Below, in pieces: positions 12,866 through 50,656 of a stretch of DNA of 64,000 nt (position 1 is the first letter of the stretch; each line of letters starts with the position of its first letter). The notes beneath the pieces were generated by a model. That model was not told the DNA's origin, did no database searches, and saw nothing but the letters and a program-made list of their open reading frames with translations. The position numbers were made by a program, and so were the translations under genes. The stretch is taken from the sequence record PV796108.1; one strand, given 5' to 3'.

Positions 12866-13297
12866 ATGTATACAACAATTGATTTATTATCAAAGAGTCT
12901 TAATGAAAATCAAATTCGTGGTAGATTAGGCTTAGATTACTCTGACATAGTTGAATTAAAACATGTACATATGCCCGTTCTTCTTCATGGAAGAAAAGGT
13001 GAAATGCATTATTACTTGTTAAAAAATCCAGATAATTATCCTGGCGCTCAAGCTGATACTTTATCTGATATGAAAAGTATTGTTGCTGTTTCTCCAGAAC
13101 TTGAACCATGGATAGAAGAACTAATAAGTGAAACAGACGAACACGACGGAAGTTTCATTGGTCGAACTAATAACTACAAAAATGATATTTACCCATATTG
13201 GTGGTTAGTTTCTCATACATTAATACCATGTTTATCAGAGTCTAATACAAGTTCAATTGTGCAACTAAAAAGTGATGAAGACTTAACAATAGATTAG
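12866..13297 (+). CDS. hypothetical protein, C-terminal tag; paralog of 13307
   Basis: MYTTI start, YYLL..P..Y.G, YWW; ends SNTSSIVQLKSDEDLTID. Confidence 0.75.
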   Translation: MYTTIDLLSKSLNENQIRGRLGLDYSDIVELKHVHMPVLLHGRKGEMHYYLLKNPDNYPGAQADTLSDMKSIVAVSPELEPWIEELISETDEHDGSFIGRTNNYKNDIYPYWWLVSHTLIPCLSESNTSSIVQLKSDEDLTID

Positions 13298-13306
13298 AGG
13301 TGACAC

Positions 13307-13741
13307 ATGTACACAACAATAAGACAATTAATGGATGATGTCGGTTTTGATGAGGTAGCTTATCAGATTGGAATGGCTGCAAAAGATATGAATAAAGCAT
13401 TTGATTTTGAAATACCTGTTTACTTAGTAGGAGAAAATCATAACAAGCAATGGTATTACTTGATAGACCATCCTGATGGATATGAAGGAGGAAATAGTAA
13501 TGTTCTTGTTGCATTACAAGATATCAAAATCTATAAAGAACGAGAAGTTCGTCCATATTCAGACTGGGAAAATCTTAGGGATGAAGTAGACGAAGATGGC
13601 GATTTCCTTGGTGATTATAATGATTATGATTCGGCAATCAACAAGTATTGGTGGATTTCTTTTAGCCAACCAATCACATTGTTTGAGTACGATAACAATC
13701 AAAATCTTAGAAAGTTAAATAAAGAAACCCCTTTTGAGTGA
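13307..13741 (+). CDS. hypothetical protein, C-terminal tag; paralog of 12866
   Basis: MYTTI start; ends NNQNLRKLNKETPFE. Confidence 0.75.
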   Translation: MYTTIRQLMDDVGFDEVAYQIGMAAKDMNKAFDFEIPVYLVGENHNKQWYYLIDHPDGYEGGNSNVLVALQDIKIYKEREVRPYSDWENLRDEVDEDGDFLGDYNDYDSAINKYWWISFSQPITLFEYDNNQNLRKLNKETPFE

Positions 13742-13827
13742 GCAATTTGTAATGGAATGTTGTATTCTATTAAATGGGATACAACCTGCCATTATAAGTG
13801 GCACTAAAATTGGGGAGGGACTTATAA

Positions 13828-14901
13828 ATGCTAGACTTTTTATTAGTTGCGATTTCCATTATTGGATTTATCGCATTAGGCGCTTTTGCGTATTCGATTT
13901 GGAAGGCTGCAAGAAACCATGAAACAACACACTATGACACGAAGGACGAACATGCTTATGGAGAATTTGCATTCAACAATAAGTTATGGGTATTACCTGT
14001 AGTTGCTATTTTGATGTTTACAATCTTCTTCTTTAACTTATGTACAACTCGTGTTCAACCAGGTTATAACGGCATTACATATTCATTAGTATCAGGTTTA
14101 AAGAATGACGTTAAGACACCAGGTTTAAAAGTGCATTATCCATGGGAAACAATTCATGATTATCCAACATCAACAGAAACGGTTTATTTAAAGAAACCAA
14201 AGAAAGATGATGGAGAGGATGACAAGAGCTTTTCAGTGAATACAAACGATGGTAAGAGTGTAGATGTAGATGCAGTTTATTCATATCATATGCAATCTGA
14301 AAAACTTCCACACATCTTTGCACGTTTCCGTCGTCAGCCATCTAATAAAATTGAGGAATCTTATATTAAACAAGAGATTTCTAACCATGTACAAGCTGCA
14401 ACAACAAAGTATTCTGTTCTAGAAGTATATTCACACAAACGTTCTGAAATCACAAAAGAGATTAAAGACAATCTAGCAAAATCACTTGTGAAAGATGGTA
14501 TTGTACTAGAGAAGTTTACAATCGCAGATGTTCGTCCTGATAAAGATACAAAAGTTAAACTTCAGGCTATTGCTGACATGCAAAACGAACAAGAACGTTT
14601 AGCTCGTGAAGAACAGGTTAAGCGTCAACAAGCAGCGAATGATAAGATTGAAGCTGAAGGTAAGAAAGTTACAGAACTTATCAACGCAGATCGTGATGCA
14701 GAGAAAATCCGTATCAATGCTGAAGCACAATCTGTAGCCAACGAAAAATTAAAAGCTTCATTAAGTCCAGAAGTTATTCAATCTGAATGGATTAAGAAAT
14801 GGAATGGACAAAAATCTGTTGTTGAAGGTGGTTCTGGTTCTATTATTAACATGCCAGCTGACATTATTAAACAACAATTGGAACAAGGGGCTAAGAAGTA
14901 A
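13828..14901 (+). CDS. SPFH/band 7/prohibitin-domain membrane protein
   Basis: two TM segments, TRVQPGYNGI, DGKSVDVD, FTIADVRPD, coiled-coil tail, KKWNG. Confidence 0.85.
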   Translation: MLDFLLVAISIIGFIALGAFAYSIWKAARNHETTHYDTKDEHAYGEFAFNNKLWVLPVVAILMFTIFFFNLCTTRVQPGYNGITYSLVSGLKNDVKTPGLKVHYPWETIHDYPTSTETVYLKKPKKDDGEDDKSFSVNTNDGKSVDVDAVYSYHMQSEKLPHIFARFRRQPSNKIEESYIKQEISNHVQAATTKYSVLEVYSHKRSEITKEIKDNLAKSLVKDGIVLEKFTIADVRPDKDTKVKLQAIADMQNEQERLAREEQVKRQQAANDKIEAEGKKVTELINADRDAEKIRINAEAQSVANEKLKASLSPEVIQSEWIKKWNGQKSVVEGGSGSIINMPADIIKQQLEQGAKK

Positions 14902-15143
14902 TAACCAACACTGTCGGAGGTGTTAAATTCGCTTCTTAACATTATCTGCATTTTTAGAAGTATTAATGGGGTAACACAGGGGTATTAAACATAAATCAGT
15001 GGGAGCTTAACGGCTCCCCTCTTTCAGGGAGGAGTAATCCTCCCCTTTCTGTTTTAAGTAATGATTCTTGAATGAGTCCCAAGAGTCAAGTAGGGCAAGG
15101 AAGAGAATTCCCCTAGATTCTCTTCCCTGAAGGAGATGATAAT

Positions 15144-15482: not shown

Positions 15483-15487
15483 ATACG

Positions 15488-15829: not shown

Positions 15830-15844
15830 TGGGAGGTAGTTATT

Positions 15845-16186
15845 ATGTTAAAAGCACTGTTTCCAAAGAAACCTACACCTCATGAGTTAGAAATAATAAG
15901 ACTACAAAAGAAAATAGCACAACTAGAAGATGAGAATCATGAGTTACAAATGAAATTAAAAGTGAAACGAGTTATTGATGCGCCGACGCCAGTTAATGGT
16001 TTAATCATGACTTCTAATACATACGAAGTCTTTTCTCGTCATGAGAAGATGACACTAAGTGAAGGTGCTATCAGATGGAGAGGTCTTGAAATAGTTAAAA
16101 CAAACTCATTGGCATTTACAGATGGGTTGTTGTACTATCTTTCAGAGTATGAAGAATACATGAAAGAGAAAGGCGTGAAAGGATGA
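15845..16186 (+). CDS. hypothetical protein with short coiled coil
   Basis: 113 aa, RBS GGGAGG. Confidence 0.7.
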   Translation: MLKALFPKKPTPHELEIIRLQKKIAQLEDENHELQMKLKVKRVIDAPTPVNGLIMTSNTYEVFSRHEKMTLSEGAIRWRGLEIVKTNSLAFTDGLLYYLSEYEEYMKEKGVKG

Positions 16187-16635
16187 ACATCAAGACATTA
16201 AGTATTCTTCATAGTAATTTAAGCGCAGAAGAAAGAGGTATTTTCTATAAAGACATTCTGCAAAAATTACATGAGAAGAGACAACAAAAAGATATGGTTT
16301 TAAATTTAACTGGTTTACCATATTCTAGTGCAAAGCATGTGCAACAGATGGAATGTGGTATGCCTGTTTATCTATTAAAGAACCCTAACGTTCATGATAG
16401 ATATGCTATTTCTGCTTATTTAGATGAAGAATGTACGCAACATGTAGGCTGGGTTAGTCGTGGCGGAGGTACTTTATTCCCTCAGGCACAAGCAAATCAT
16501 GAAGTTTACAGAAAAATTATCCAAAAAGAGAAATTTATTCTTGCATATCCGTTTAAAAGTGGATACTATATAACCAAAAGCTTGAGCAATCAAAATACTT
16601 TAGGCGTTATGAAACACGATGAAGTATTATATTGA
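16183..16635 (+). CDS. HIRAN-like domain protein with C-terminal tag
   Basis: LLKNPNVHDRYAISAY...HVGWV resembles HIRAN EPxNxxDxxAI...IGYV; ends NQNTLGVMKHDEVLY. Confidence 0.55.
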   Translation: MNIKTLSILHSNLSAEERGIFYKDILQKLHEKRQQKDMVLNLTGLPYSSAKHVQQMECGMPVYLLKNPNVHDRYAISAYLDEECTQHVGWVSRGGGTLFPQAQANHEVYRKIIQKEKFILAYPFKSGYYITKSLSNQNTLGVMKHDEVLY

Positions 16636-16837
16636 TATTCATTTTGAACAAGGGAGATAGTTTTTGTCTCTCTTTTTGAAAATGAATACGCCAAACAGTA
16701 CCCGTGCAGAAAGGAACCCAAAAGAGTAAGCGTCAGCTGCACACGTAGGGGAATCATGGACTTTTGTTTTCTACCCTCTGGACTAGAGATATACCTCAAA
16801 ACAGAGGGTATTTTCATAAATAAAGGAGGGTAAGACA

Positions 16838-18581: not shown

Positions 18582-18953
18582 ATGTCTAACTTATTAGATA
18601 AGTACAAAGATACTCCTATTTATTTTTATGGAGGATACATCATGATTCTTACTCCTAATGAAAAGAACACGTTCTATGGAATTCCACCTGTTTTAACTAA
18701 GATGTTAGCAGATGCTGGCATCGAATTAAAACCACATAAAGATAAACAAAGTACGGAAAAAGGTTGGAGAATCACGGACCAAGTTACTTACTTAACAAGA
18801 CAAGATTTTTCATTCCGTTTTCCTAAAATCATGGAAGAAATATATCCGTTAATGATTGATAAACCAGAAGGAAAGTTAGTTGATCTAAGTGAGTTTACTG
18901 ACAATGGTTATGGATTAAAACAATTTAAAAGTGAGAAGGACTTACTTTTATAA
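18582..18953 (+). CDS. GIP..W..HW..GW family protein, C-terminal tag
   Basis: YGIPP...KPH...KGW; ends DNGYGLKQFKSEKDLLL. Confidence 0.7.
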   Translation: MSNLLDKYKDTPIYFYGGYIMILTPNEKNTFYGIPPVLTKMLADAGIELKPHKDKQSTEKGWRITDQVTYLTRQDFSFRFPKIMEEIYPLMIDKPEGKLVDLSEFTDNGYGLKQFKSEKDLLL

Positions 18954-19610: not shown

Positions 19611-19946
19611 ATGCACGAATTAATAATGGCTGCTGAAATTGAAGAAGGGTTAGATGTTCCTAGTTTATATGTTCATTTGGAACATCCATATTATCCATAT
19701 GTAAAATATACAAATAAACCACAACACACCATTATACCTAGCCCTGTACATCCAAGAGCTGTAGAATGGTGTAAGAAGTATAATATTCCACTAAAACCAC
19801 ATTTTGATGCAACATTGGATAAAATGGGATATAAACAAAGTAGTTTTTGTGTCTTTCATATCGTAGCACAAAAAGATTTCGAAAAATTATTTCCTCCTAT
19901 TAATAAAACTGCATTTCATAAGTTAAAAGGGGAGTCGATAATATGA
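19611..19946 (+). CDS. GIP..W..HW..GW family protein, C-terminal tag
   Basis: VEWCKKYNIPLKPHF; ends INKTAFHKLKGESII. Confidence 0.7.
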   Translation: MHELIMAAEIEEGLDVPSLYVHLEHPYYPYVKYTNKPQHTIIPSPVHPRAVEWCKKYNIPLKPHFDATLDKMGYKQSSFCVFHIVAQKDFEKLFPPINKTAFHKLKGESII

Positions 19947-20254
19947 AGATAGGCGAAATATTATATTCTTGTTTTGAAAATAGACATGGTGATACAAAGT
20001 ATCGCAAGTATACTATAGTTGAAAAGAAAAGAAAGTTTGAACATGGAATACCACCTCATGTTGTACCTTGGTTAAAAGAAAACAATGTGCCATATGGTAA
20101 GCATTGGTCTCCTCGTACAAGTGCAAAGGGTTGGGTGTCCACCTATTATGTAGAAGTTCAAGAAATCGAAGAATCACTGTATGAAGCGCATTCCAAAAAA
20201 GTGAATCAAGCTATGCTTGGATTTCTTAAACAAGAAGAACAGAATTTATTGTAA
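19943..20254 (+). CDS. GIP..W..HW..GW family protein, C-terminal tag
   Basis: GIPPHVVPW..HW..KGW; ends VNQAMLGFLKQEEQNLL. Confidence 0.75.
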   Translation: MKIGEILYSCFENRHGDTKYRKYTIVEKKRKFEHGIPPHVVPWLKENNVPYGKHWSPRTSAKGWVSTYYVEVQEIEESLYEAHSKKVNQAMLGFLKQEEQNLL

Positions 20255-20265: not shown

Positions 20266-20565
20266 ATGCAATTAGTAACAAAATTACGTCCAGAAGAACC
20301 AAATGACAGTGAATATCGTGTGTATACATATACAGCAGCAGGTACACATAAGTTAGGTATTCCTGCTCATGTTGGTGCATGGTGTATATCAAATGGTATT
20401 CGTATATCAAGTCATTGGCACGCCTATGATGAATGGGAAGGATGGTTGTGTACTCAGAATTTACTTGTTGATTTCATTACAAAGGAGGAATATGAGAATT
20501 TAAAGCGTAAAGAAAACAACAAAGGTGCTGTTAATGAATTAAAAACAGAAATATTATTTGATTAA
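20266..20565 (+). CDS. GIP..W..HW..GW family protein, C-terminal tag
   Basis: GIPAHVGAW..HW..EGW; ends NNKGAVNELKTEILFD. Confidence 0.75.
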   Translation: MQLVTKLRPEEPNDSEYRVYTYTAAGTHKLGIPAHVGAWCISNGIRISSHWHAYDEWEGWLCTQNLLVDFITKEEYENLKRKENNKGAVNELKTEILFD

Positions 20566-20576: not shown

Positions 20577-20897
20577 ATGAACCACTTGAGTCATGTTGGT
20601 GAAACTAACTATGCAAGAATAGTAGGTCGTGGTGGAAGTGTTCGACATAACAAGTATGTTATACTTGCAAAAGAACAACCAATTCGAAGTGGTTTTCCTC
20701 CTGAAATAGCTGAATGGGCTGAATCCAAAGGCTTAGTATTGTCTGAACATTGGACAGAATCACATAAAAGTGATGGATGGAAAGCTAGTTTATACGTATC
20801 TGTTGAACGTGTTGATGAAGATGAATATCTACGGCACAAAAAATTCAGCAACAATGATGTAGTAAACAAATTAAAATCAGAAACCGAAGTATGGTAA
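20577..20897 (+). CDS. GIP..W..HW..GW family protein, C-terminal tag
   Basis: GFPPEIAEW..HW..DGW; ends NNDVVNKLKSETEVW. Confidence 0.75.
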   Translation: MNHLSHVGETNYARIVGRGGSVRHNKYVILAKEQPIRSGFPPEIAEWAESKGLVLSEHWTESHKSDGWKASLYVSVERVDEDEYLRHKKFSNNDVVNKLKSETEVW

Positions 20898-26467: not shown

Positions 26468-26728
26468 ATGATCTTAATTGGAATCGTTCTATTTGCTGCA
26501 ATCGTAGCTGCTTGCATCGTTTACCCGATGTATCTACATGGAACAATAAAAAATTTAAAAGGTACTATTGATTTCTACAAAGAAGAAAACGATATGTTAA
26601 GAACTTATATTAGTAAACGCAACTGGACTGAAAACATTCAGAGTCAAGTTAGAAGTGGAAGAGGATTAGAAGTTATTAATGGAGGCCGATCTTATAATAG
26701 AAAGGGGAGAAAAGAAGATGCAAATTGA
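26468..26728 (+). CDS. single-TM plus coiled-coil protein
   Basis: N-terminal TM, RBS AAGGAGG. Confidence 0.7.
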   Translation: MILIGIVLFAAIVAACIVYPMYLHGTIKNLKGTIDFYKEENDMLRTYISKRNWTENIQSQVRSGRGLEVINGGRSYNRKGRKEDAN

Positions 26729-27029
26729 TGAATATCGTGGAATTTTACCAGCTGATGTATTTGATTCATTAAATGCAGGTAACGCTATCCAATTTGAATG
26801 TGCTTATAATCATAGCTCTTTCATGAATAATAGAAAAAAGTATGAAGAATATGTTATGAGCTGGATTGAAAGAATTACGAATCATTTCAATGAATGCAAG
26901 AAAACAAATCATAAGTTAAAGTACCACATATATTCACCACACAATCATGCAAAAGTAATTATATATCCACCTGGATATCAAGAAACAAATACAACACTTG
27001 GAATGAAAACAGAAGACGTATTATATTAG
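26718..27029 (+). CDS. hypothetical protein, C-terminal tag
   Basis: RBS GGGGAG; ends ETNTTLGMKTEDVLY. Confidence 0.7.
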   Translation: MQIDEYRGILPADVFDSLNAGNAIQFECAYNHSSFMNNRKKYEEYVMSWIERITNHFNECKKTNHKLKYHIYSPHNHAKVIIYPPGYQETNTTLGMKTEDVLY

Positions 27030-29234: not shown

Positions 29235-29492
29235 ATGAGAGACTATAAAGGCAAAGAAATTGTTGTCGGAAATAAACGTGCCCATTTTAATTTTTATAAA
29301 AGCATTATCGGAAAGAAAGGTACAGTTACTGAACGTGCGAATATGAAAAGTTGGTTTGTAAACATTGATCGTAGCGAAACTGTAGCTGTTTATGATGAAT
29401 GGATTGTGCATGAAGATGATTTACTTGTTATTCCTAAAGAAAATGAAGAAACAATCACTTCAATGAAACAAGAGGACCTAGCATATGATTAA
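29235..29492 (+). CDS. SH3/KOW-like array protein, C-terminal tag
   Basis: VVGNKRA...WIVHEDDL; ends ENEETITSMKQEDLAYD. Confidence 0.75.
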   Translation: MRDYKGKEIVVGNKRAHFNFYKSIIGKKGTVTERANMKSWFVNIDRSETVAVYDEWIVHEDDLLVIPKENEETITSMKQEDLAYD

Positions 29493-29745
29493 AAGTTATG
29501 TTGGTAAAGAAGTTATTATTGGAGGTAAACGTGCCGCAGACCTTTGTTACTTTAAACTTGTTGGAAAGAAAGCAAAAGTTACTGGGGTTAAAAGTTACAA
29601 AGAATGGTATGTAGATATTGATAGAAGTGAAGATATGGGTATTTACAACAATTGGATTGTACATGAAGAAGATTTACTTGTCACTTCTCAAGAAAATCAT
29701 GAAACAGTAACATATATGAAGCCAGAGGTTTTGCCTTATGACTAA
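29485..29745 (+). CDS. SH3/KOW-like array protein, C-terminal tag
   Basis: IIGGKRA...WIVHEEDL; ends ENHETVTYMKPEVLPYD. Confidence 0.75.
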   Translation: MIKSYVGKEVIIGGKRAADLCYFKLVGKKAKVTGVKSYKEWYVDIDRSEDMGIYNNWIVHEEDLLVTSQENHETVTYMKPEVLPYD

Positions 29746-29962
29746 TAAAAAGTTTTGTGTTGTTGGTGATAAACGTGCAAATGATTTTGGATATGACCCT
29801 ATTGTTGGTCAAAAAGTACAGGTTCTTTCTAAAGATGATAACTATACAACAGTTAGGGTTGATAAGTGGGGACATTGGTATATAGCAAATGAAGATGCAA
29901 TATACAGTGCTGACAACAATAAAGATAATCTTCCTTTTATGAATCGAGATGATGAAATATGA
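29738..29962 (+). CDS. SH3/KOW-like array protein, C-terminal tag
   Basis: VVGDKRA...WYIANEDA; ends NNKDNLPFMNRDDEI. Confidence 0.7.
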   Translation: MTNKKFCVVGDKRANDFGYDPIVGQKVQVLSKDDNYTTVRVDKWGHWYIANEDAIYSADNNKDNLPFMNRDDEI

Positions 29963-30201
29963 AAAATGGAGACATCATGATTGTTGGTCATAAGCGTGCA
30001 ATGAAATATGGATATCGCAAAGCGATAGGATGCAAAGTTATTCTTGGCAAACGACATACAGTTTTCAATGAATTATGGGGAGTAAGGCTGATGCATACAG
30101 ACCCACATCAATTCCATGACTATTTTGTACATGAAGAAGATATTCTTCCTATCACAAATGAACATGCTCTTACGCAATTGAAAGGAGAATTAGACGTATG
30201 A
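29959..30201 (+). CDS. SH3/KOW-like array protein, C-terminal tag
   Basis: IVGHKRA...FVHEEDI; ends TNEHALTQLKGELDV. Confidence 0.7.
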   Translation: MKNGDIMIVGHKRAMKYGYRKAIGCKVILGKRHTVFNELWGVRLMHTDPHQFHDYFVHEEDILPITNEHALTQLKGELDV

Positions 30202-30443
30202 ATGCAGGAGAAAGAAGAATTGTAGGCAAAAAGCATTCTAGGTCATTAAGCTACATTCCTTTAGAAGGAAAAGAAGTACAACTCGCTATGCCACATAGAG
30301 GACTAAAAGATACATGGTTTATAAATCCAATTCGTAAAGATGGCAGTGTAGCTGGTGACCGTTGGTATGTTCATGTTGAAGACTTATTAGCAACGAACAA
30401 CCAACAAAGACTTTCTACTATGAAAGGAGAGATAGAAGTATGA
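30198..30443 (+). CDS. SH3/KOW-like array protein, C-terminal tag
   Basis: IVGKKH...WYVHVEDL; ends NNQQRLSTMKGEIEV. Confidence 0.7.
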   Translation: MNAGERRIVGKKHSRSLSYIPLEGKEVQLAMPHRGLKDTWFINPIRKDGSVAGDRWYVHVEDLLATNNQQRLSTMKGEIEV

Positions 30444-30715
30444 AATGGTATGAAGCTATACATGAAATGAGTAAGGGTAAAATCGTAAGTCCAGAAGGTC
30501 ATGCGGCACATTACTTTATTCATAATGATTCAGCTTTTGTTTGTATGCCAAAGCAAGATTATGTATTCACAACAAGTAGTTTGCCAGCTTGGATTAAAAA
30601 AGATTGGCATGTAACACATGAAACAATCCCAGAAGCTTATAAAGCAGAGGCTGATAAACTGCTAAAGGCTGGTGATGAATTTGTACGTAAAATTTCCGAT
30701 AGGATCAATAGTTAA
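30440..30715 (+). CDS. hypothetical protein (untagged)
   Basis: MKWYEAIHEMSKGKIV start, ATGA coupled. Confidence 0.65.
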   Translation: MKWYEAIHEMSKGKIVSPEGHAAHYFIHNDSAFVCMPKQDYVFTTSSLPAWIKKDWHVTHETIPEAYKAEADKLLKAGDEFVRKISDRINS

Positions 30716-30947
30716 AATCATAAAATGTGACTCTCAAAGTCAATCCTACAAAGACCAAGTAGGTAAACAAGGAATTGTCCTACGCCAAGGTATCAACTAT
30801 TTAGGAAACCTGGTTGTTCAGATTGAATTAGGAGAAAGCAGTATATTCTCTGGAACATGGTGGATAGAAGAAGATGATTTGGTTTTATTAAGAAACATAA
30901 GTAATAAATATACTTCCCATTTTTTAAATAAGGAGGTAGAACTATGA
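30672..30947 (+). CDS. SH3/KOW-like array protein, C-terminal tag
   Basis: VGKQGIV...WWIEEDDL; ends SNKYTSHFLNKEVEL; start uncertain. Confidence 0.65.
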   Translation: MMNLYVKFPIGSIVKIIKCDSQSQSYKDQVGKQGIVLRQGINYLGNLVVQIELGESSIFSGTWWIEEDDLVLLRNISNKYTSHFLNKEVEL

Positions 30948-31228
30948 GTAAGTTTAGGATTCGTGACAAAGTTATTGTTGGAACTAAATATGCTAAGGAG
31001 CATTATTATGACAATATAGCTGGTCAAGAAGGAGTTATTGTTGATGGACCTGAAAGAAAAGGAATGGGGCCAGATAGCAAAATAGTCGAGCCAGCTTGGA
31101 GCGTAAAAGCATTGTCTACTCATACTGGACATATGATAGTTATGTATGTTCACACTGAAGACCTTCATACTTTAGGCAATGAAAATGCATTGAAGCTTCT
31201 TAATCTGAACAAGGAAATTGAAATATAG
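30944..31228 (+). CDS. SH3/KOW-like array protein, C-terminal tag
   Basis: IVGTKYA...YVHTEDL; ends GNENALKLLNLNKEIEI. Confidence 0.7.
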   Translation: MSKFRIRDKVIVGTKYAKEHYYDNIAGQEGVIVDGPERKGMGPDSKIVEPAWSVKALSTHTGHMIVMYVHTEDLHTLGNENALKLLNLNKEIEI

Positions 31229-31240: not shown

Positions 31241-31537
31241 ATGAAAGGAGACAGGCTACAAGTTCGTATTACTGATAAACGATTTACAGGATGGAAATAT
31301 CATTACGGTAATATTTATGACGTAGAAGATAACGGAAGAAATCAATATAGGGTTCTTGTTACTGAAAACAATACAAAGCAAATGGAAGTTGTAGCAAAAG
31401 AGTCATTTGACCAGCAAGATTATATTAGTAGCTTTTATAAAGCTGGGCAATGCTTAATAGGTAGCAAGTATGCTGAAATCTATAGAGCAACTAATATAGG
31501 CAACCTGGGTTTAATGAAACAGGATGAATTATTGTAG
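31241..31537 (+). CDS. hypothetical protein, paralog of 31803, C-terminal tag
   Basis: GW.YH.G.IYDV...Y.VLVTENNT; ends TNIGNLGLMKQDELL. Confidence 0.75.
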   Translation: MKGDRLQVRITDKRFTGWKYHYGNIYDVEDNGRNQYRVLVTENNTKQMEVVAKESFDQQDYISSFYKAGQCLIGSKYAEIYRATNIGNLGLMKQDELL

Positions 31538-31548: not shown

Positions 31549-31806
31549 ATGAGTAAACGAATTAAAAATGGAACAGTTGTGACAATAGGTAGCGAAAAAG
31601 CTGCTACTCATAACTATTCAACAGTTGTAGGTCATAAAGCTACAGTAAGAAAATATGAAAGTAACATCATTGCATCGTATTATGAGGTAGTAGTAGAAGG
31701 ATTTGAAGATTGGGATGCTGTATGGTATATACAAGCAGTAGATTGTATCCCCATCCCTATTGATAATATGAAGTCACTTGAATCATTAAAAGAGGATGTA
31801 CTATGA
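31549..31806 (+). CDS. SH3/KOW-like array protein, C-terminal tag
   Basis: IGSEKAA..YSTVVGHKATV...WYIQAVDC; ends DNMKSLESLKEDVL. Confidence 0.7.
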   Translation: MSKRIKNGTVVTIGSEKAATHNYSTVVGHKATVRKYESNIIASYYEVVVEGFEDWDAVWYIQAVDCIPIPIDNMKSLESLKEDVL

Positions 31807-32102
31807 AGAAAGGTGACAAACTCAAGATAGAAGTAATAGACCATGGATTGTCAGGATGGGAATGGCACCATGGTCATATCTATGATGTATCTGTACTTGA
31901 TTCTCATACTTATCAAGTATTAGTAACAGAGAATAATACAGCTCAAATGAAAAAAGCAAGTCTAAAAGATTATAGTCAAATGGAATACATGGTTGATTAT
32001 TATGAGAGAGGTCGTGCTCAAATCACAACTGACTCTTCTAGAGTGTACGAACCTAGCAATAAAGGCAATTTGATTATGATGAAGAAAGATGATTTATTGT
32101 AG
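31803..32102 (+). CDS. hypothetical protein, paralog of 31241, C-terminal tag
   Basis: ends SNKGNLIMMKKDDLL. Confidence 0.75.
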   Translation: MKKGDKLKIEVIDHGLSGWEWHHGHIYDVSVLDSHTYQVLVTENNTAQMKKASLKDYSQMEYMVDYYERGRAQITTDSSRVYEPSNKGNLIMMKKDDLL

Positions 32103-35497: not shown

Positions 35498-35671
35498 ATG
35501 TATTTCAGTATGAAAAAGAATCGTTACAACTCTTCAAGTTGGTTTAACATAAACTTTAAATACAATTACGCACCATTTAATAATATAGAAGCTATGTCCT
35601 CTTTAAAAAAAGAAAAAGACTTTGATGAAAAGAAGCCTGTAATGTCTACAGGTTTCTCATGGTCAGCATAG
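35498..35671 (+). CDS. 57 aa peptide containing the tag motif internally
   Basis: RBS AAAGGGGAG; contains NNIEAMSSLKKEKDF; not in track. Confidence 0.55.
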   Translation: MYFSMKKNRYNSSSWFNINFKYNYAPFNNIEAMSSLKKEKDFDEKKPVMSTGFSWSA

Positions 35672-35680: not shown

Positions 35681-35980
35681 ATGAGGTATTATATGGGTCA
35701 AGATGGAAACATTATAAAAGGGATAGCTTGTATGTCTTATTGGGGCGACTGGATTGCACTAGAAAGACAAGATAATATAAACGTAAGACCAGCTTCTATA
35801 GAACAGTTACAACGAGTGAAGCCTGATTCTATTATTAAGTATGTAAGTAAAGAGTACAGAGAACTTTCAGAACACGATTTAAAACGCAATCATACATGGA
35901 AAAGAATACAATCTCCTGATGAATTATATGTCTCTAATGAAACGTATAAACAAACTTTAAAGGAGGAAGAACAGTTTTAA
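35681..35980 (+). CDS. S..Y..L...DL..N..W family protein, C-terminal tag
   Basis: YVSKEYRELSEHDLKRNHTW; ends SNETYKQTLKEEEQF. Confidence 0.75.
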   Translation: MRYYMGQDGNIIKGIACMSYWGDWIALERQDNINVRPASIEQLQRVKPDSIIKYVSKEYRELSEHDLKRNHTWKRIQSPDELYVSNETYKQTLKEEEQF

Positions 35981-35994: not shown

Positions 35995-36330
35995 ATGAGA
36001 AATGTCATATTCAGAGGTAATCAGTACGAAGTGTATGCAATTGTTCAGTATCAACAAATGAGAATGATACTAACAAAACAAACAGGAAAAGAAAAAGAAG
36101 TACATCGGCCTGTACCAGTTGATAAGTTATTACTAGGTCAAAGTGGAAAAATAATTTATCACGATGCATCAACAGAAAAATTCGTAGTTAAACCATATCC
36201 GTATATCCATCCTTATTATGAAGGATTAAAATGGTTGAAGCTTCCTCTACATAATGAATCAGATTTCAGAATATTACCTATTGAAAACAACGAATCCATT
36301 GTTACCCTAAAAAAAGAAGAAGTGATTTAG
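35995..36330 (+). CDS. YE(A/V)YAI family protein, C-terminal tag
   Basis: YEVYAIV; ends ENNESIVTLKKEEVI. Confidence 0.75.
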   Translation: MRNVIFRGNQYEVYAIVQYQQMRMILTKQTGKEKEVHRPVPVDKLLLGQSGKIIYHDASTEKFVVKPYPYIHPYYEGLKWLKLPLHNESDFRILPIENNESIVTLKKEEVI

Positions 36331-36343: not shown

Positions 36344-36700
36344 ATGCGGAAAGTACAAATCATAGATGGAAATGGCGAACCTGTATTTCAATGCAATGCA
36401 TATGCAGTTATGACAGACGATGTTAGTGTTTCTTTTCTGTTAAAAAAAGCTAAGAACGAACTTAAATATTATCGACCACGAACAGTAGAAGGTATGAGAA
36501 AACAAGTTGGTAAAAGACTTGTTTACAAAGATGACATCATAGATAAATCCATAGAAACGGCTGGTGGTTATTTCGAAGGGTATTATCAGAACTACAAATG
36601 GGTTTCATGGGTCATCAGCAACGGAAAGACTTATCGGATATTAGATACTACGAATAATGATAGCAAAATCTCTTTGAAAAAAGAGGAAGAAATTGTCTAA
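36344..36700 (+). CDS. hypothetical protein, C-terminal tag
   Basis: CNAYAVM; ends TNNDSKISLKKEEEIV. Confidence 0.75.
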   Translation: MRKVQIIDGNGEPVFQCNAYAVMTDDVSVSFLLKKAKNELKYYRPRTVEGMRKQVGKRLVYKDDIIDKSIETAGGYFEGYYQNYKWVSWVISNGKTYRILDTTNNDSKISLKKEEEIV

Positions 36701-38395: not shown

Positions 38396-38719
38396 ATGAG
38401 AGAGCCAGTTATTAAATACAAAGGGCAAATAATTAAACCTGTAGCTATTGTTTTTAGAAGAAGTGGTAGTAAAGGTGATAGATATATTGCATTGGTTCAT
38501 ACACCAGGACAATATTATCATCCTGTCACGATAGAGAGGATTCTTAGAGATAAGGTTACACCAGAAATCATATATGAATCACCAAAGTATATGAGGATAC
38601 TCTCGCACGATTTAGAGAAGAATTACAGTTGGTATCAAATAAGAAAAGAAGATATCATAATCCATAATGATTCGAATGGAGATGCCTTCCAGTATTTAAA
38701 GCAAGAAGAGGTGATATGA
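38396..38719 (+). CDS. S..Y..L...DL..N..W family protein, C-terminal tag
   Basis: YESPKYMRILSHDLEKNYSW; ends DSNGDAFQYLKQEEVI. Confidence 0.75.
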   Translation: MREPVIKYKGQIIKPVAIVFRRSGSKGDRYIALVHTPGQYYHPVTIERILRDKVTPEIIYESPKYMRILSHDLEKNYSWYQIRKEDIIIHNDSNGDAFQYLKQEEVI

Positions 38720-39093
38720 TGAAGAAAGCATTTGCTCTTATTCCAGGTGAGCTTCCAGAAGAAGAACTATATGGAGATGAAAAATGTGATTACGAGGATT
38801 ATCAAAATCCAATAAGAAAAGAAGTATTAGCTATTGCTACTCGTTTTGACGAAAGGCTAGTTGGATTACATAGACATGAAGGTGCGAGTTACTGGCCCAT
38901 GACTCTTAAAGAATTTGAAGCTGATGATGATGATTACATAGAAGTTTTTGTATCGGAACAGTATCATCAACTAAGTACCGAAGATTTACGAGAAAATTAT
39001 GTATGGTCTACGGTTATAAATGATGACTATGAAATACGTGACGGATTAAACAATGATAATGTTGTGAATATGAAAGGAGAGATTGAGATATGA
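38716..39093 (+). CDS. S..Y..L...DL..N..W family protein, C-terminal tag
   Basis: FVSEQYHQLSTEDLRENYVW; ends NNDNVVNMKGEIEI. Confidence 0.75.
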   Translation: MMKKAFALIPGELPEEELYGDEKCDYEDYQNPIRKEVLAIATRFDERLVGLHRHEGASYWPMTLKEFEADDDDYIEVFVSEQYHQLSTEDLRENYVWSTVINDDYEIRDGLNNDNVVNMKGEIEI

Positions 39094-39416
39094 AACGAGC
39101 ATTTGCCACAACAAGAGAAATGAGGGGTAGAGGCCCAGAAGTAGAAGCATTAGCTATTATGCTGCGTAGAGATGGTAGAACAATCGTCTTGCACAGAGAT
39201 GACAGAGGCGGACATCCTAAACGAGTTGAGGATATTGAGAACGCAGATTACGGTAGAGGGAAAACAATATTTGTATCCGATAAATATTATGACCTCAAGA
39301 GAGAAGACTTACGTTATAACCATAGATGGTCAGATGTATATCAAGAAGAATTTAGAATAGAAGCTGATAGCAATATCACTGCTTTCACATCTATGAAAGG
39401 AGAAGAGGTCTTATGA
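39090..39416 (+). CDS. S..Y..L...DL..N..W family protein, C-terminal tag
   Basis: FVSDKYYDLKREDLRYNHRW; ends DSNITAFTSMKGEEVL. Confidence 0.75.
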   Translation: MKRAFATTREMRGRGPEVEALAIMLRRDGRTIVLHRDDRGGHPKRVEDIENADYGRGKTIFVSDKYYDLKREDLRYNHRWSDVYQEEFRIEADSNITAFTSMKGEEVL

Positions 39417-39739
39417 CAAAAGCATTTGCACATGTAAAAACAGGTAATAGAGTAGTAGAAGTTGAAGCAATCGCAATTGTTGTTCGTAAAGGCGGTAGGA
39501 TGATTGCTTTATATCATTCTCAAGGATGTGGGTTTCATCCACTTAGTCTTGCAGGTATGATGCGAGATGATGATGGTGAAATGGAAATCATATATAGGTC
39601 TCCAAATTATGACAAGTTAAGTAAAAGGGATTTTAGAGACAACTACATATGGAAACTCATACAGGATGGTAACTATAGAATAGAACAACCAAATAATTTA
39701 GAGGCTGTTTCTACTATGAAAGGTGAGTTACTAATATGA
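39413..39739 (+). CDS. S..Y..L...DL..N..W family protein, C-terminal tag
   Basis: YRSPNYDKLSKRDFRDNYIW; ends NNLEAVSTMKGELLI. Confidence 0.75.
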   Translation: MTKAFAHVKTGNRVVEVEAIAIVVRKGGRMIALYHSQGCGFHPLSLAGMMRDDDGEMEIIYRSPNYDKLSKRDFRDNYIWKLIQDGNYRIEQPNNLEAVSTMKGELLI

Positions 39740-40044
39740 AAACTGTATGTTTTGAACATGGAACAGAATATGATGCACATGCTATTATTCAAGCAGGTAA
39801 TATTGTGTATCTATTAGTAACAAGAGAGGGCGCTAACATGTCCCCTATGACACCTTTTGATTTACAATGTCATGTTAACGGTAAAATTGAATATATTTCT
39901 CCTGAATTAAAAAGAAGGAGGCTCCATAAACATGGTACAAGATTTAATGGTGAAGACTTCTACTGGATAAACACAGGTGCAAAATGGTCTTACAAAAATA
40001 ACAATAACACCATAACTTCATTAAAGAACGAAATACCGCTATGA
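39736..40044 (+). CDS. YE(A/V)YAI family protein, C-terminal tag
   Basis: YDAHAII; ends NNNNTITSLKNEIPL. Confidence 0.75.
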   Translation: MKTVCFEHGTEYDAHAIIQAGNIVYLLVTREGANMSPMTPFDLQCHVNGKIEYISPELKRRRLHKHGTRFNGEDFYWINTGAKWSYKNNNNTITSLKNEIPL

Positions 40045-40343
40045 GACCTGTATATCTTTCAACATTCGAAGAAGTATATGAAGCATATGCAATTGTAAAG
40101 GAAGGTAATAACACTGATGTTCTTATTAAAAGTATTGATGAAGGCAATGTAGCTACAAACCCGTACCATGTAGCACAATTCTTTGAGGGAGAAGTTATTT
40201 ATATAGATGAATCACTTAAAAGATTTGATGGGACTAGGGCGGTTTGTATTGGCTACACATGGATAGAGGAAGAAGATCATTGGCGTTATGTAGATATTAA
40301 CTCAGGTGCAGCACTTAATATGAAAGAAGAATTACCATATTAA
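40041..40343 (+). CDS. YE(A/V)YAI family protein, C-terminal tag
   Basis: YEAYAIV; ends INSGAALNMKEELPY. Confidence 0.75.
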   Translation: MRPVYLSTFEEVYEAYAIVKEGNNTDVLIKSIDEGNVATNPYHVAQFFEGEVIYIDESLKRFDGTRAVCIGYTWIEEEDHWRYVDINSGAALNMKEELPY

Positions 40344-41353: not shown

Positions 41354-41719
41354 ATGATTAAACTTTTATCACCTATAGGTACAGAAGTAGAAGTGATATG
41401 TGTCACATCAGAAGTACATAAAGTACGAGAAAATGTACCTATGCGGGAAAAAGGAGTGATGGTTCGAAGAGAAATAGAAAGAGAGTATAAGATATTCAAA
41501 GCTCTTGTAAAAGGATATGGCGGCGGTTGTCACCCGTATTTAGTAAAAGACGATATAAAAGTTGAGTATGCATCCGACAAGTTGGATTCATTATCCTTGA
41601 TACATATAAAAAACAACTATGAATGGATGAATTTCCGCACAACCAATCCATTAAAGTTCATGAAGCAGAATAAGAACAACATTAAAGATTGGAAGCAGGA
41701 AGAAGAAATCTTATATTGA
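41354..41719 (+). CDS. hypothetical protein, C-terminal tag
   Basis: RBS AAAGGAG; ends NKNNIKDWKQEEEILY. Confidence 0.7.
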   Translation: MIKLLSPIGTEVEVICVTSEVHKVRENVPMREKGVMVRREIEREYKIFKALVKGYGGGCHPYLVKDDIKVEYASDKLDSLSLIHIKNNYEWMNFRTTNPLKFMKQNKNNIKDWKQEEEILY

Positions 41720-41732: not shown

Positions 41733-42059
41733 ATGATAAGAATACAACGAGATTCTGGAATTATACGTGAAGTATATGGGGTAGTAAGAACAAAGGGTTC
41801 TATGCCAGCTTATGCAACTTTAGAAAAGAAACGAAATGGCGACGTTGGGACAGCCTCTTCATTTGAAAAAGTTAAGTTGCTCGGCGATGAAATCCTATAC
41901 AGGGATGATTCGTTACAAGCAAATGAAGAAGATGGATATGATGGATTCATATGGTATTTCTCTTCTATTGATACAAATCCAATGGATATAGTAATACCTG
42001 ATACCAATGGTTTAACAACAAGATTTATGAAACAAGAAGTAACTTCTGAATTGGAGTGA
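41733..42059 (+). CDS. YE(A/V)YAI-like family protein, C-terminal tag
   Basis: REVYGVV; ends TNGLTTRFMKQEVTSELE. Confidence 0.7.
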   Translation: MIRIQRDSGIIREVYGVVRTKGSMPAYATLEKKRNGDVGTASSFEKVKLLGDEILYRDDSLQANEEDGYDGFIWYFSSIDTNPMDIVIPDTNGLTTRFMKQEVTSELE

Positions 42060-42063
42060 TAAT

Positions 42064-42363
42064 ATGAAAAGAATATATGAGCCTGATACAAAGAAAATCA
42101 TAGATATATTTGGCGTTATATTGTCACCTTATGGTATATATATGGTTTTAATAAAAGAAGATTCAGGTGGTGCATGTACTTTTTCTGAAGCAGTAGAGAT
42201 AGGTGCGACTCTTATATATGAAGATGAGTTTCTATCTTCGCACCAACATCACATAGAAAAGTATTATTATTGGAAAGGTTATGGAAAAGATAACCCAATG
42301 GAAAAACTGATTGAAAACAATGAATCAGGTGCTTGCGGATTAAAAAAAGAAGCACCATTATAA
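42064..42363 (+). CDS. YE(A/V)YAI-like family protein, C-terminal tag
   Basis: DIFGVIL; ends ENNESGACGLKKEAPL. Confidence 0.7.
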   Translation: MKRIYEPDTKKIIDIFGVILSPYGIYMVLIKEDSGGACTFSEAVEIGATLIYEDEFLSSHQHHIEKYYYWKGYGKDNPMEKLIENNESGACGLKKEAPL

Positions 42364-46907: not shown

Positions 46908-46964
46908 TGGTTGAGTTTTACTTTCATCTAAAGTAACATATTGGTAAGAAAGGGAGAGGGGAAT

Positions 46965-47993: not shown

Positions 47994-47996
47994 GTT

Positions 47997-48329: not shown

Positions 48330-48349
48330 TTAAAAAGGGGATATGTAAA

Positions 48350-48598: not shown

Positions 48599-48611
48599 GG
48601 GGTCATGTGAC

Positions 48612-49298
48612 ATGACAGTATTGGCGATACTTTTCATCATAACAGTATTTGCTTGTCTTTACTTAATGGTTGGTGGCTTATCAAAAGATCAAAAAGTAAG
48701 AGAAGTAAAAAACAAGCTTCGTCGAATTGAATCGGAGCATGAAAAAGAAATCAAAGATTTAAAAACAAAGCATGACAAAGAAATTGATAAACGTAACGAG
48801 ATTATAGATGAAGTCATGGCAAGAGCTGCTGACAAGATTCGTAGTCTTGGTGCAATTGTTGATAAAAAACAAGGCAGAGGTTCTGCTCATGAAATCGTGA
48901 CAGAACGCATTCATTTCAGCGAGAATCGTGAAGATATTTCATATCGAGTTATGTATGATGCATTCGCAAAACAACTGGATAAGAAACCTGAACAACCAAA
49001 ACCAGTTCAAATGAAGAAACATGTAACATCATTTGGTGGCTGGAGTGGTGGAGGCGGTTCTTCATCATCTTCATCAAGTTCTAGCTCAAGCTCCAGACGT
49101 TCTGGAAGTAGTTCATCTTCTCGTTCTTCTAGCTCAAGCAGTTATGATTACAGTTCACCATCTTATTCTTCATATGATAGTGACAGTAGTTCTTCTTATA
49201 GCTCAGGTGGTAGCTGTAGTTCTAGCTCAAGTTCAAGTAGCTATGATTCAAGTTCTAGTTCAAGTGATTCATCAGGAGGCTACGGTGGCTGCGATTGA
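48612..49298 (+). CDS. membrane-anchored coiled-coil protein with Ser-rich tail
   Basis: N-terminal TM; about 85 aa S/G/Y/D tail ending GGYGGCD. Confidence 0.8.
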   Translation: MTVLAILFIITVFACLYLMVGGLSKDQKVREVKNKLRRIESEHEKEIKDLKTKHDKEIDKRNEIIDEVMARAADKIRSLGAIVDKKQGRGSAHEIVTERIHFSENREDISYRVMYDAFAKQLDKKPEQPKPVQMKKHVTSFGGWSGGGGSSSSSSSSSSSSRRSGSSSSSRSSSSSSYDYSSPSYSSYDSDSSSSYSSGGSCSSSSSSSSYDSSSSSSDSSGGYGGCD

Positions 49299-49353
49299 TA
49301 GGGGGTATCTTACCCCCTCCCAGCTTTACCGTCATCCAAGAGATACTATCACG

Positions 49354-49557
49354 ATGCGTGACTATGCAGATAATATCCAACCTTTAATAGTTGATTATGC
49401 ATATGACTCATATGATAAGATTCTGACTGAAGAGATGAAAAAATATATGGAACAACTCCACAAACAACTATATAGCAGTATTATGGATGGGTATAGTGAC
49501 AATCCTTCTAATAAGAAAACTGTTAAACGTATGAAACAGGAGGTTGAGGTTTCATGA
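49354..49557 (+). CDS. hypothetical protein, C-terminal tag, possible tail-tube-like fragment
   Basis: starts RDYADNIQPL; ends SNKKTVKRMKQEVEVS; start uncertain. Confidence 0.55.
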   Translation: MRDYADNIQPLIVDYAYDSYDKILTEEMKKYMEQLHKQLYSSIMDGYSDNPSNKKTVKRMKQEVEVS

Positions 49558-50054
49558 CGACATTTAGAGGTGCTGATATTATTGCTACATTTAATGACCA
49601 AGTAATTGGGGCATTAAACGAAATGGATTTTTCAGTATCCAGAGAAGATAGTTCTATTTATACTATAGGTGCTGCACCTGGGCATCATTCTTTTTCAAGA
49701 GGAATGACATTAGATAGAGTTGTACATGAAGATGCACGAGAAGATATTAGAAGGCAACTTGCAGAGAGTTATGGAGTAGATAATGATATTCCTTTTTATC
49801 AGTGGGCAAGAGCAACACGATTATCTATGCGTCATGGTAGAAGAGGATATCCTGATATCAGTCTACAAGTAGACAGTATTGATTATAGTATCATGTACCC
49901 TGCTACTTTCAGTGTTGTTAAAAGTAAAGCACAGGATTTTAAAAGATTTATTCGTCCAATTGAAATGGATGAAAGTAAGTTCAAATATGTTGATACTAGT
50001 AACTCCGTTAGAAGCTGGAAGCTTAATCGAGAGGAGGAAGTTTATTATGACTAG
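49554..50054 (+). CDS. tail-tube N-terminus-like fragment, C-terminal tag
   Basis: TFRGADIIATFNDQVIGAL..M.FSVSRE...IYTIG...SFSRG; ends SNSVRSWKLNREEEVYYD. Confidence 0.5.
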   Translation: MTTFRGADIIATFNDQVIGALNEMDFSVSREDSSIYTIGAAPGHHSFSRGMTLDRVVHEDAREDIRRQLAESYGVDNDIPFYQWARATRLSMRHGRRGYPDISLQVDSIDYSIMYPATFSVVKSKAQDFKRFIRPIEMDESKFKYVDTSNSVRSWKLNREEEVYYD

Positions 50055-50358
50055 CGATTATGCGAAACTTTCAAACTCAAGAATAACTGAAGAAGCAGTT
50101 AGGTTAATACGAGAAGCTTGTGCTCCATATACTGGACAACCAATTAATCAAAACAAACGAAGCATGGCAGATGCTATGGCTCGTTCACTACAAAAATTCT
50201 TTACAGATGATTGGAAAGTAGAAGTTGCTGAAGATGGCATGGGGACATTTACATATTTGAAACCCATTACGGTAACAACAGCAACGATTGATATGCGACA
50301 TGTTCTTAACAACAACTTCTTTGTAGATAAAATGAAAGAAGAAACTGCATATGATTAA
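50047..50358 (+). CDS. tail-sheath C-terminal-domain-like fragment, C-terminal tag
   Basis: SDYAKLSNSRITEEAVRLIREACAPYTGQP; ends NNNFFVDKMKEETAYD. Confidence 0.5.
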   Translation: MTSDYAKLSNSRITEEAVRLIREACAPYTGQPINQNKRSMADAMARSLQKFFTDDWKVEVAEDGMGTFTYLKPITVTTATIDMRHVLNNNFFVDKMKEETAYD

Positions 50359-50656
50359 TTACTCAGATATGATTAATCGAGAAATGCAAACAATCTCAGC
50401 AACGTTTGAAAGCCGAGAAGATAGAGAACAAACTGTTCAATATATGAATCAACTCATTAGAAGTAAATTATCTAGTATGAAAGAAGGAACAATCGTAAAT
50501 GGTATCAAGTGTGAGCAAGGTAATGATGGGAGATTTAAATTAAATATAAATTTCTATGTACCAGCTCCATTAGATAAAATCAATGTAAAGATTGGTACTC
50601 CTAATACGAATCAATTTAATGTAAATACATTGAAGCACGAAGCCTCTTGCGATTAA
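50351..50656 (+). CDS. possible sheath C-terminal-like fragment, C-terminal tag
   Basis: helix-helix then FKLNINFYVPAPLDKINVKI; ends TNQFNVNTLKHEASCD. Confidence 0.45.
   Translation: MINYSDMINREMQTISATFESREDREQTVQYMNQLIRSKLSSMKEGTIVNGIKCEQGNDGRFKLNINFYVPAPLDKINVKIGTPNTNQFNVNTLKHEASCD

Follow-up and report, generated by a model that had tools for sequence, protein, structure and literature searches.

Encapsulin cargo-loading peptides are short, disordered C-terminal sequences that sit on unrelated cargo proteins and dock into a shell of the HK97 fold; their consensus is of a Gly/Ser-rich L-x-phi-G-S-L type (x, any residue; phi, hydrophobic residue). In phage T4, the capsid-targeting sequence (CTS) of the T-even internal proteins is a short terminal peptide that forms the sole common element of diverse, fast-evolving small proteins and is portable to foreign proteins (PMC3012670). 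For bacterial ubiquitin-like (Ubl) systems, target consensus motifs and the targets of most operon types are not known (PMC11601603). Here, we analysed the last 64 kb of Bacillus phage Edson (PV796108.1, positions 169814-233813, sequence identical; hereafter the window, 64,000 nucleotides), in which small proteins encoded near a Ubl cassette share a short C-terminal tag. We found that the tag is a genuine peptide-level feature common to unrelated small proteins, and a stronger one than first reported. It probably serves, as a short linear motif, as a common docking or targeting signal for one shared partner. In the literature searched we found no description of the tag, of the related phages WH1 and KLEB27-3, or of shared C-terminal motifs in phage early proteins.

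A C-terminal peptide common to unrelated small proteins

Edson has a genome of 233.8 kb, infects B. cereus and has vB_BceM_WH1 (WH1) as its sole close relative among GenBank phages. Nearly all genes of the window lie on the plus strand and, except for nucleotide-metabolism and replication enzymes, are annotated as 'hypothetical protein'. A sequence-only reading of the window had counted 35 open reading frames (ORFs) with a shared C-terminal end, 30 of them with K and five with N-[KR], and this count was reproduced exactly with the deposited gene calls, on which all tag counts in the window rest. These ORFs encode 74-166 aa, lie within 12866-50656 (window coordinates, unless the record is named) and end in [LMFW]-K-x-[ED] (30) or [LMFW]-N-[KR]-[ED] (5), followed by 2-6 residues. 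With the acidic residue set to 0, the Edson motif reads N(-10)-x2-[TS]-[VLI]-x2-[LMFW]-K-x-[ED](0)-e-x-phi plus 0-3 residues, which places [TS] at -7, [VLI] at -6, [LMFW] at -3, K at -2, a frequent E at +1 and a hydrophobic residue at +3. The spacing is fixed, with Asn at -10 in 91% of copies (cluster-weighted) and in 34/35 window copies, and this replaces the looser N-x5-8 spacing described before. Lys is shifted or lost in the five N-[KR] variants, and two of these are Lys-free at the motif (N-R-[DE]).

We observed a marked enrichment of the motif at protein ends, which the sequence-only reading had named as a check. Across the whole Edson genome, the strict pattern is present at 44 ORF ends, compared to 1.4 expected from its internal rate (Poisson P ~4e-49) and to 1.9 on average (at most 9) in a shuffled-tail control. 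All but one of the strict copies (43/44) lie on the plus strand at record 148-221 kb, and the structural block contains none. About 13 further tagged ORFs are located upstream of the Ubl cassette at record 148.8-168.1 kb, beyond the window, and the limits first drawn around the array were too narrow. Three extra copies have a longer trailing extension of 8-18 residues after the acidic anchor, including the ORF at 35498-35671, and with a definition that tolerates the sequence dialects of relatives 49/240 small Edson ORFs are tagged. The earlier statement that enzymes and membrane proteins lack the tag held up, as no ORF of more than 180 aa is tagged (0/29) and segments resembling transmembrane helices occur in 1/35 tagged versus 11/47 untagged small ORFs. 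A tblastn search of all phage genomes with a 22-aa tail returned the self match only, by a method too insensitive for this purpose.

To compare the carriers themselves, tails were removed from the Edson and WH1 proteins before BLAST and HHalign analysis. The carriers comprise tandem paralog families and singletons that fall into at least 10 groups unrelated at the profile level, in line with the unrelated families noted from the sequence at first. Four BLAST clusters join by HHalign as one superfamily (SF-B; 53-93% probability) and two others also join; all other pairs of carrier groups gave a probability of 6% or less. Pfam and PHROG searches of the carriers were essentially empty, and SF-B homologs amounted to one near-identical match among 5.8 billion proteins, with none in IMG/VR. 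A beta-strand precedes the Asn in many carrier families.

We modelled one member of each of two families with AlphaFold2 (AF2), using alignments of window paralogs only (13 and 8 paralogs). The SF-B protein starting at 39413 is predicted to form a 94-residue alpha/beta domain with a predicted local distance difference test score (pLDDT) above 90, for which Foldseek found no match in the PDB. The protein starting at 29235 is predicted to form a KOW/SH3-like barrel, with SPbeta YorP as the best small match (TM 0.62). In both models the tag has a pLDDT of ~40-55, no secondary structure and no packing against the domain, in comparison to 76-96 for the adjoining domains. The tag is the best-conserved stretch of both alignments, yet its pLDDT is low.

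Two carriers derive in part from structural genes of the phage. The beginning of ORF 49554 corresponds to the N-terminal portion of the Edson tail-tube protein (55% identity over 49 aa; the KLEB27-3 tube protein matches at 37% over 109 aa), and ORF 50047 includes 31 residues of the sheath (52% identity). The parent tail-tube (record 109361-109936) and sheath-like (record 109995-111572) genes have no tag, and the tag is therefore portable. These chimeras (49554-50358) join phage gene fragments to new sequence plus the tag and could be decoys or dominant-negative assembly fragments.

Comparison with WH1 shows which part of the tail is conserved. Among 27 reciprocal Edson-WH1 ortholog pairs, identity is 71% at motif positions, 46% at the interleaved tail positions and 59% over whole proteins. 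Synonymous codon change at conserved residues is similar for the motif (22%) and for other positions (28%), and by these data selection acts on the peptide and not on the DNA. In WH1 gp261 (record 207409-207795), the ortholog of ORF 41354, the tag is extended by 10 residues that partly repeat it (..DWKQEDERMWKEDWMYD).

Spread among relatives and overlap with ribosome-binding sites

In WH1, ~38-40 tags were found in the 90 kb scanned. An exhaustive hidden Markov model search with the KOW-like family identified 117 distant homologs, most of them with a tail of the same design (N..LL), and the contigs that encode them hold arrays of small same-strand ORFs and belong to the same broad phage group. 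On each contig, many ORFs that are unrelated by BLAST carry a common local dialect of the tag. This dialect is ..NNKEAxxLL[DS]KE[WY] on contigs L014 and L018, ..NxxAxxLLRR[DN] or ..LLKKD on L015 and L022, and ..TNKxAxxFLxK[KR] on L019; that of L021 equals Edson's. The core common to all dialects consists of N(-10), [A/T/S](-7) and hydrophobic residues at -6 or -4 and at -3. Dialect-tolerant counts of tagged small ORFs are 8/40 for L014, 8/33 for L015, at least 7/27 for L018 and 3/35 for L019, and across L014, L015, L018, L019, L021 and L022 the tagged share is 9-26%, compared to 1-2% in an internal-cut control. The same scan found no tag among 23 small ORFs of L020, and in the whole genome of KLEB27-3 matches are at chance level (3/308 ORFs; 3/194 small ORFs). 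As judged from these sequences, the tag is clade-wide among Bacillaceae jumbo phages and is present on many unrelated small ORFs. The L014 contig stops before reaching its cassette position; an 845-aa protein that it encodes is 36% identical to KLEB27-3 gp277 and 27% to Edson. KLEB27-3 gp156 (record 140953-141216; 87 aa), encoded beside NrdE, ends in ..GINKETFQDVKKDTVLW, which resembles a genuine tag and is perhaps a relic.

We next consider whether the motif might be a by-product of translational coupling, that is, the Shine-Dalgarno (SD) and initiation region of the next gene read as protein. The next gene's SD lies over the phi-K-x-E codons in 12/35 Edson tags, and the K-G-E codons are AAAGGAGA(A/G) (AAAGGAGAR) in six coupled cases. 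Gly at x is confined to coupled genes (6/16 versus 0/19 of the others). However, in 19/35 tags the next start lies at least 4 nt past the stop, so that the SD follows the stop or, in 7 of these 19, no coupled gene exists. All eight gene ends that the sequence-only reading had listed when it held ribosome-binding site (RBS) overlap to be insufficient belong to this class. A non-circular test, in which ORFs were picked by the upstream half-motif alone, showed that [KR]-x-[ED] continues in 11/15 uncoupled ORFs against a background of 0.018, although an SD-like 4-mer is present in those 9 nt in 0/15. In L018, every synonymous codon is in use at the N, A and L positions. Conversely, the coupled but untagged gene at 44-412 (..GKGEVLI) has K-G-E with neither the Asn nor the hydrophobic positions and represents an RBS-only product. 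We consider an origin from coupling extremely unlikely and reject an RBS-only origin for Edson; the RBS is a partial contributor that sets x = Gly in Edson and dictates K-E-W and R-R-D elsewhere.

In the sister lineages, the overlap goes further. The terminal K-E-W of L018 is always encoded as AAG GAG TGG TAA nATG, in which AAGGAG is the SD of the next gene (AAG 9/9, GAG 11/11), whereas the codons of the tag core vary (N 2, A 4, L 6). In L015 and L022, R-R is always AGG AGG (SD AGGAGG), followed by GAT TAA (T)ATG, but uncoupled members with the Arg dialect read K-K-[DN], encoded AAG AAA. The charged end of the tag in L018, L015 and L022 thus shares codons with the next RBS; the dual-coded ends, in which the next SD sets the last 2-3 residues, are located at L018 4708-8300, L015 11757-12785 and L022 11073-11868. 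Much of the dialect difference at the charged end exists because the register in which the SD is embedded differs, and the basic and acidic character is retained where the SD is absent. The dialects might suggest a phage-encoded reader that co-evolves with the tag, but this idea loses force because the SD encodes the charged end.

Table 1 Tagged ORFs of the window. Positions are window coordinates; gaps are given as noted for uncoupled genes.
Feature	Position	Strand	Tag	Remarks
Family 8	12866..13297	+	NTSSIVQLKSDEDLTID (13244-13294)	Next start 9 nt past stop; SD after stop
Family 8	13307..13741	+	NNQNLRKLNKETPFE	N-K variant; uncoupled (gap 86)
Singleton	16183..16635	+	NQNTLGVMKHDEVLY	Uncoupled (gap 202)
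Family 1	18582..18953	+	NGYGLKQFKSEKDLLL	
Family 1	19611..19946	+	NKTAFHKLKGESII	K-G-E overlapped by next gene's SD
Family 1	19943..20254	+	NQAMLGFLKQEEQNLL	SD after stop
Family 1	20266..20565	+	NKGAVNELKTEILFD	SD after stop
Family 1	20577..20897	+	NNDVVNKLKSETEVW	SD after stop
Family 9	26718..27029	+	TNTTLGMKTEDVLY	Asn 1-2 positions nearer than usual
KOW/SH3-like barrel family	29235..29492	+	NEETITSMKQEDLAYD	AF2 barrel, residues 1-65; tail unstructured
KOW/SH3-like family	29485..29745	+	NHETVTYMKPEVLPYD	
KOW/SH3-like family	29738..29962	+	NKDNLPFMNRDDEI	Lys-free N-R variant
KOW/SH3-like family	29959..30201	+	NEHALTQLKGELDV	K-G-E = AAAGGAGAA = next gene's SD
KOW/SH3-like family	30198..30443	+	NQQRLSTMKGEIEV	
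KOW/SH3-like family	30675..30947	+	NKYTSHFLNKEVEL	N-K variant
KOW/SH3-like family	30944..31228	+	NALKLLNLNKEIEI	N-K variant
Family 7	31241..31537	+	NIGNLGLMKQDELL	
KOW/SH3-like family	31549..31806	+	NMKSLESLKEDVL	
Family 7	31803..32102	+	NKGNLIMMKKDDLL	Uncoupled (gap 35)
57-aa ORF	35498..35671	+	..NNIEAMSSLKKEKDFDEKKPVMSTGFSWSA	Tag, then 18-residue extension
SF-B	35681..35980	+	NETYKQTLKEEEQF	
SF-B	35995..36330	+	NNESIVTLKKEEVI	SD after stop
SF-B	36344..36700	+	NNDSKISLKKEEEIV	Uncoupled (gap 100)
SF-B	38396..38719	+	NGDAFQYLKQEEVI	
SF-B	38719..39093	+	NNDNVVNMKGEIEI	
SF-B	39090..39416	+	NITAFTSMKGEEVL	
SF-B	39413..39739	+	NLEAVSTMKGELLI	AF2 pLDDT >90 for residues 1-94, <50 for residues 97-108
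SF-B	39736..40044	+	NNNTITSLKNEIPL	
SF-B	40041..40343	+	NSGAALNMKEELPY	Terminator-like hairpin follows; 1 kb downstream without plus-strand gene
SF-B	41354..41719	+	NKNNIKDWKQEEEILY	
SF-B	41733..42059	+	NGLTTRFMKQEVTSELE	
SF-B	42064..42363	+	NESGACGLKKEAPL	Uncoupled (gap 153)
Singleton	49285..49557	+	NKKTVKRMKQEVEVS	
N-terminal half from tail-tube gene	49554..50054	+	NSVRSWKLNREEEVYYD	Lys-free N-R variant at motif
With 31-residue tail-sheath piece	50047..50358	+	NNFFVDKMKEETAYD	
Family 13	50351..50656	+	NQFNVNTLKHEASCD	End overlaps terminator-like hairpin

Candidate partners of the tag

A binding signal is the most likely function of the tag. We read the tag as a portable C-terminal motif, predicted to be disordered, with the common core N-x2-[A/T/S]-(phi)-x2-phi and, behind it, one basic and one acidic residue in this order. 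In the Bacillaceae jumbo-phage clade it has been added to small, soluble proteins of many unrelated, lineage-restricted families, and selection on the peptide maintains it. It would fold upon binding, probably into a short N-capped amphipathic helix, and would bring ~50 different small proteins per genome to a single common partner, with the individual specificities coming from the variable domains. The hallmarks of short linear motifs are present, namely a location in the disordered flank of folded domains (in two unrelated families), few fixed conserved positions and unrelated carriers. The 'docking box' of the sequence-only reading is compatible with all of this evidence; its likeness to F-box and SOCS-box proteins is an analogy only, as the tag is a disordered peptide of ~14 residues. 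Candidate readers fall into four kinds: the phage's own Ubl cassette, some component of the virion or procapsid, a protease or an unfoldase, and a hub protein of the host.

Several observations weigh against a docking signal. A presence/absence screen for the reader (Edson and WH1 versus KLEB27-3) returned 35 candidates, too many to discriminate, and singled out no partner. A sigma-70 promoter scan, in which sites were rarer than in shuffles, was uninformative on expression class. The low pLDDT of the tail could stem from the shallow alignments. In most distant homologs of the KOW-like family the N..LL tail is present, so there it could be an integral functional element and not an add-on. Finally, in the sister lineages (L018, L015, L022) dual coding with the next SD extends over the whole charged end, so translation initiation may have shaped part of the motif in these phages. 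The beta-propeller protein at 33719-35215 was rejected as a tag reader because its segment is missing in WH1.

The Ubl cassette (6816-12838) consists of six genes, which encode a poly-Ubl, a 124-aa protein, a 512-aa protein, a Prok-E2_D protein, a weak Prok-JAB match and a ThiF E1. Within the poly-Ubl are five Prok_Ub repeats of ~57 aa that each end in AGTKG, and the 124-aa protein has a conserved C-terminal ..D-F-I that is also found in KLEB27-3 gp198, L020 and L022. By Pfam the E2 matches Prok-E2_D only and is not Ubc9-like; for the 512-aa protein, tblastn matched Edson and WH1 only. The E1 has 208 relatives at E <= 1e-10, many on contigs of 205-247 kb labelled Bacillus, Priestia, Cytobacillus or Gottfriedia, and the cassette is therefore a clade-wide feature. 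These contigs are probably complete jumbo-phage genomes inside bacterial assemblies. KLEB27-3 has a full cassette (identity: Ubl 48%, E2 40%, JAB 43%, E1 45%, large protein 24%). In WH1, the poly-Ubl (gp211) and the cassette-adjacent gp208, a 493-aa protein encoded upstream of it, are annotated as virion structural proteins. An SPFH/Band-7 protein is encoded just downstream of the Edson cassette (13828-14901), and Band_7 genes are located near the cassette in L021 and L022.

A functional link between tag and cassette is possible. In its specific form, the tag would be a docking or recruitment peptide of the Ubl system, and the ~50 binders (at least 10 folds, with tandem duplication) would dock onto the E2 or the large cassette protein as substrates, Ubl carriers or a library of substrate adaptors. 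A tagged ORF directly follows the E1 gene in Edson, L021, L022 and L018, and one gene intervenes in WH1; both assessable samples that were found through the tag (contigs of P0042 and P0121) also carry E1. The earlier claim that the array begins immediately after E1 is thus correct locally, but tagged genes occur to either side of the cassette, the majority far from it and up to 38 kb away. Co-occurrence across relatives is mixed as well: KLEB27-3 combines a full cassette with chance-level tags and L020 has no tags within 10 kb of its cassette, and therefore the cassette does not need the tag. Moreover, co-occurrence is inseparable from clade membership, because every assessed tag-bearing genome belongs to the cassette-bearing clade. 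We regard this version of the docking model as rather unlikely; if true, it would give a jumbo phage an 'adaptor library' without an E3, whose interchangeable members steer Ubl conjugation to many host or rival targets. Much less credible is that the Lys of phi-K-x-E is the SUMO-like acceptor of the phage Ubl, as the sequence-only reading had offered. The literal psi-K-x-[ED] is present in 30/35 copies, in a disordered tail and with a Ubl cassette adjacent, but the two Lys-free copies already cited against a pure acceptor role were confirmed, and the sister dialects either have no Lys in the motif (L-L-R-R-D) or have it in a different register (S-K-E-W). The most invariant residues (N at -10, [AST] at -7 and the hydrophobics) lie outside the SUMO consensus, the E2 is of the wrong family, and bacterial Ubl systems have no known acceptor consensus (PMC11601603). 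On these sequences, the tag lysine is not an obligatory conjugation acceptor, and we give the acceptor reading almost no credence.

Two further versions of the docking model place the partner elsewhere. The tag could be a virion- or procapsid-targeting peptide, comparable to the T4 CTS or to encapsulin cargo-loading peptides, that packs its carriers into the head or the tail so that they are co-injected. This would fit the two carriers built from tail-tube and sheath genes and the virion annotation of WH1 gp208 and gp211; however, the WH1 annotation marks none of the tagged proteins as virion-associated, and the tagged genes lie amid nucleotide-metabolism and replication genes, outside the structural block. 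A prohead-protease or maturation motif common to the tag and head proteins was sought at plausible maturation sites of the latter, and nothing resembling the tag was found. We consider virion loading doubtful. A degron for timed proteolysis, through the phage ClpP homolog with a host unfoldase, a phage AAA ATPase or FtsH/SPFH, would suit a C-terminal, disordered tag, and candidate components exist in Edson, namely a homolog of ClpP, a classic AAA ATPase whose gene lies amid the upstream tagged genes, and the SPFH protein by the cassette. The latter two are common to Edson and WH1 and have no homolog in KLEB27-3 by tblastn. Against this, the number of residues after the motif varies (2-6, up to 18), unlike in ssrA-type tags, and KLEB27-3 has ClpP but lacks the tags. 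To our knowledge, the motif matches no known degron, and this version appears improbable. A further reading is that all carriers form one fast-evolving superfamily with the tail as its last structural element, for example an oligomerisation helix. The merging of BLAST clusters by HHalign, the strand ahead of the Asn and the tails of distant KOW-like homologs speak for it. Nevertheless, most cluster pairs remain unrelated by HHalign, the two predicted folds are clearly unlike, the tail is unpacked in both models and two carriers descend from tail genes; we rejected a single divergent superfamily on these grounds and judge shared ancestry to be very unlikely.

We return to the docking signal and to what it would mean. 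Large phages encode many small ORFans without functional clue, and about one fifth of the small proteins of this clade bear one experimentally tractable handle. A binder of one 14-residue peptide would put ~50 proteins per genome into a single pathway, be it Ubl conjugation, virion loading, timed turnover or host-hub hijacking, and the tag would double as a portable tag for cargo delivery to its partner. The dual coding of a peptide signal and an SD in lineage-specific registers (K-G-E, K-E-W, R-R-D) calls for caution in motif discovery in compact genomes.

Other genes in and around the array were also noted. The ClpP homolog (record 16443-17021, minus strand) is 41% identical to KLEB27-3 gp083, and the classic-clade AAA ATPase (record 162781-163860) lies beside a 690-aa ORFan. 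Two genes between blocks of tagged genes encode the beta-propeller protein of 498 aa (PQQ_2/BamB-like, weak Kelch) and, at 36801-37736, an NlpC/P60 peptidase that has three SLH domains; the segment at ~30.4-37.4 kb is missing or truncated in WH1. Three ORFs at 22078-26423 (474, 315 and 280 aa) match WH1 genes that are all annotated as DNA polymerase III alpha subunit, and this gene appears to be split by intervening sequences of ~0.4-0.7 kb; in KLEB27-3, an HNH endonuclease lies between its two DNA polymerase III alpha pieces. Near the end of the window, a 256-aa ORF (63197-63967) has a WH1 ortholog, gp300, annotated as 'enterotoxin', and a neighbouring ORF is annotated as 'terminal repeat-encoded protein P'.

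Comparison with known systems

The Edson tag resembles the T4 CTS in being a short terminal peptide and the only shared element of diverse small phage proteins. However, the CTS is N-terminal, is cut off by the prohead protease and marks a handful of proven virion proteins, whereas the Edson tag is C-terminal, has no protease motif linked to it and is present on ~50 carriers per genome. Encapsulin cargo-loading peptides share with it the disordered C-terminal location on unrelated proteins, but the Edson carriers are ORFans of a phage early region and the consensus is unlike. The likeness to SUMO/Ubc9 sites lies in the psi-K-x-[ED] of most copies, the disordered site and the Ubl/E1/E2 cassette nearby; the differences are a Lys that is not invariant, the Arg-Arg dialects, a core upstream of K-x-E, an E2 of the Prok-E2_D type and a strictly C-terminal position, to which SUMO sites are not confined.

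Poxvirus PRANC/F-box and SOCS-box proteins likewise combine a variable target-binding domain with a constant C-terminal element, in many paralogs of a large virus. Their boxes are folded, span ~40-50 residues and bind Skp1 or Elongin, whereas the Edson tag has ~14 residues and is predicted to be unstructured, and Pfam searches of the 35 tagged proteins gave no match to F-box/PRANC/SOCS-box-type domains. Degrons of the ssrA/ClpX type are C-terminal, disordered and portable too, but need a free alpha-carboxylate at a fixed distance, in contrast to the trailing residues of variable number in Edson. Bacterial hub-binding motifs, such as the beta-clamp-binding motif and the C-terminal tip of SSB, are also short terminal peptides that fold on binding and bring many proteins to one hub. 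They differ in sequence (Edson's own SSB, at 51421-51963, has the classical ..DDDLPF end), and the number of carriers and the restriction to ORFans of one phage clade have no counterpart among them. In conclusion, one terminal peptide on unrelated proteins is a known concept; what is new here is the peptide itself, its scale (~20% of small ORFs), its clade-wide spread and its dual coding with the RBS.

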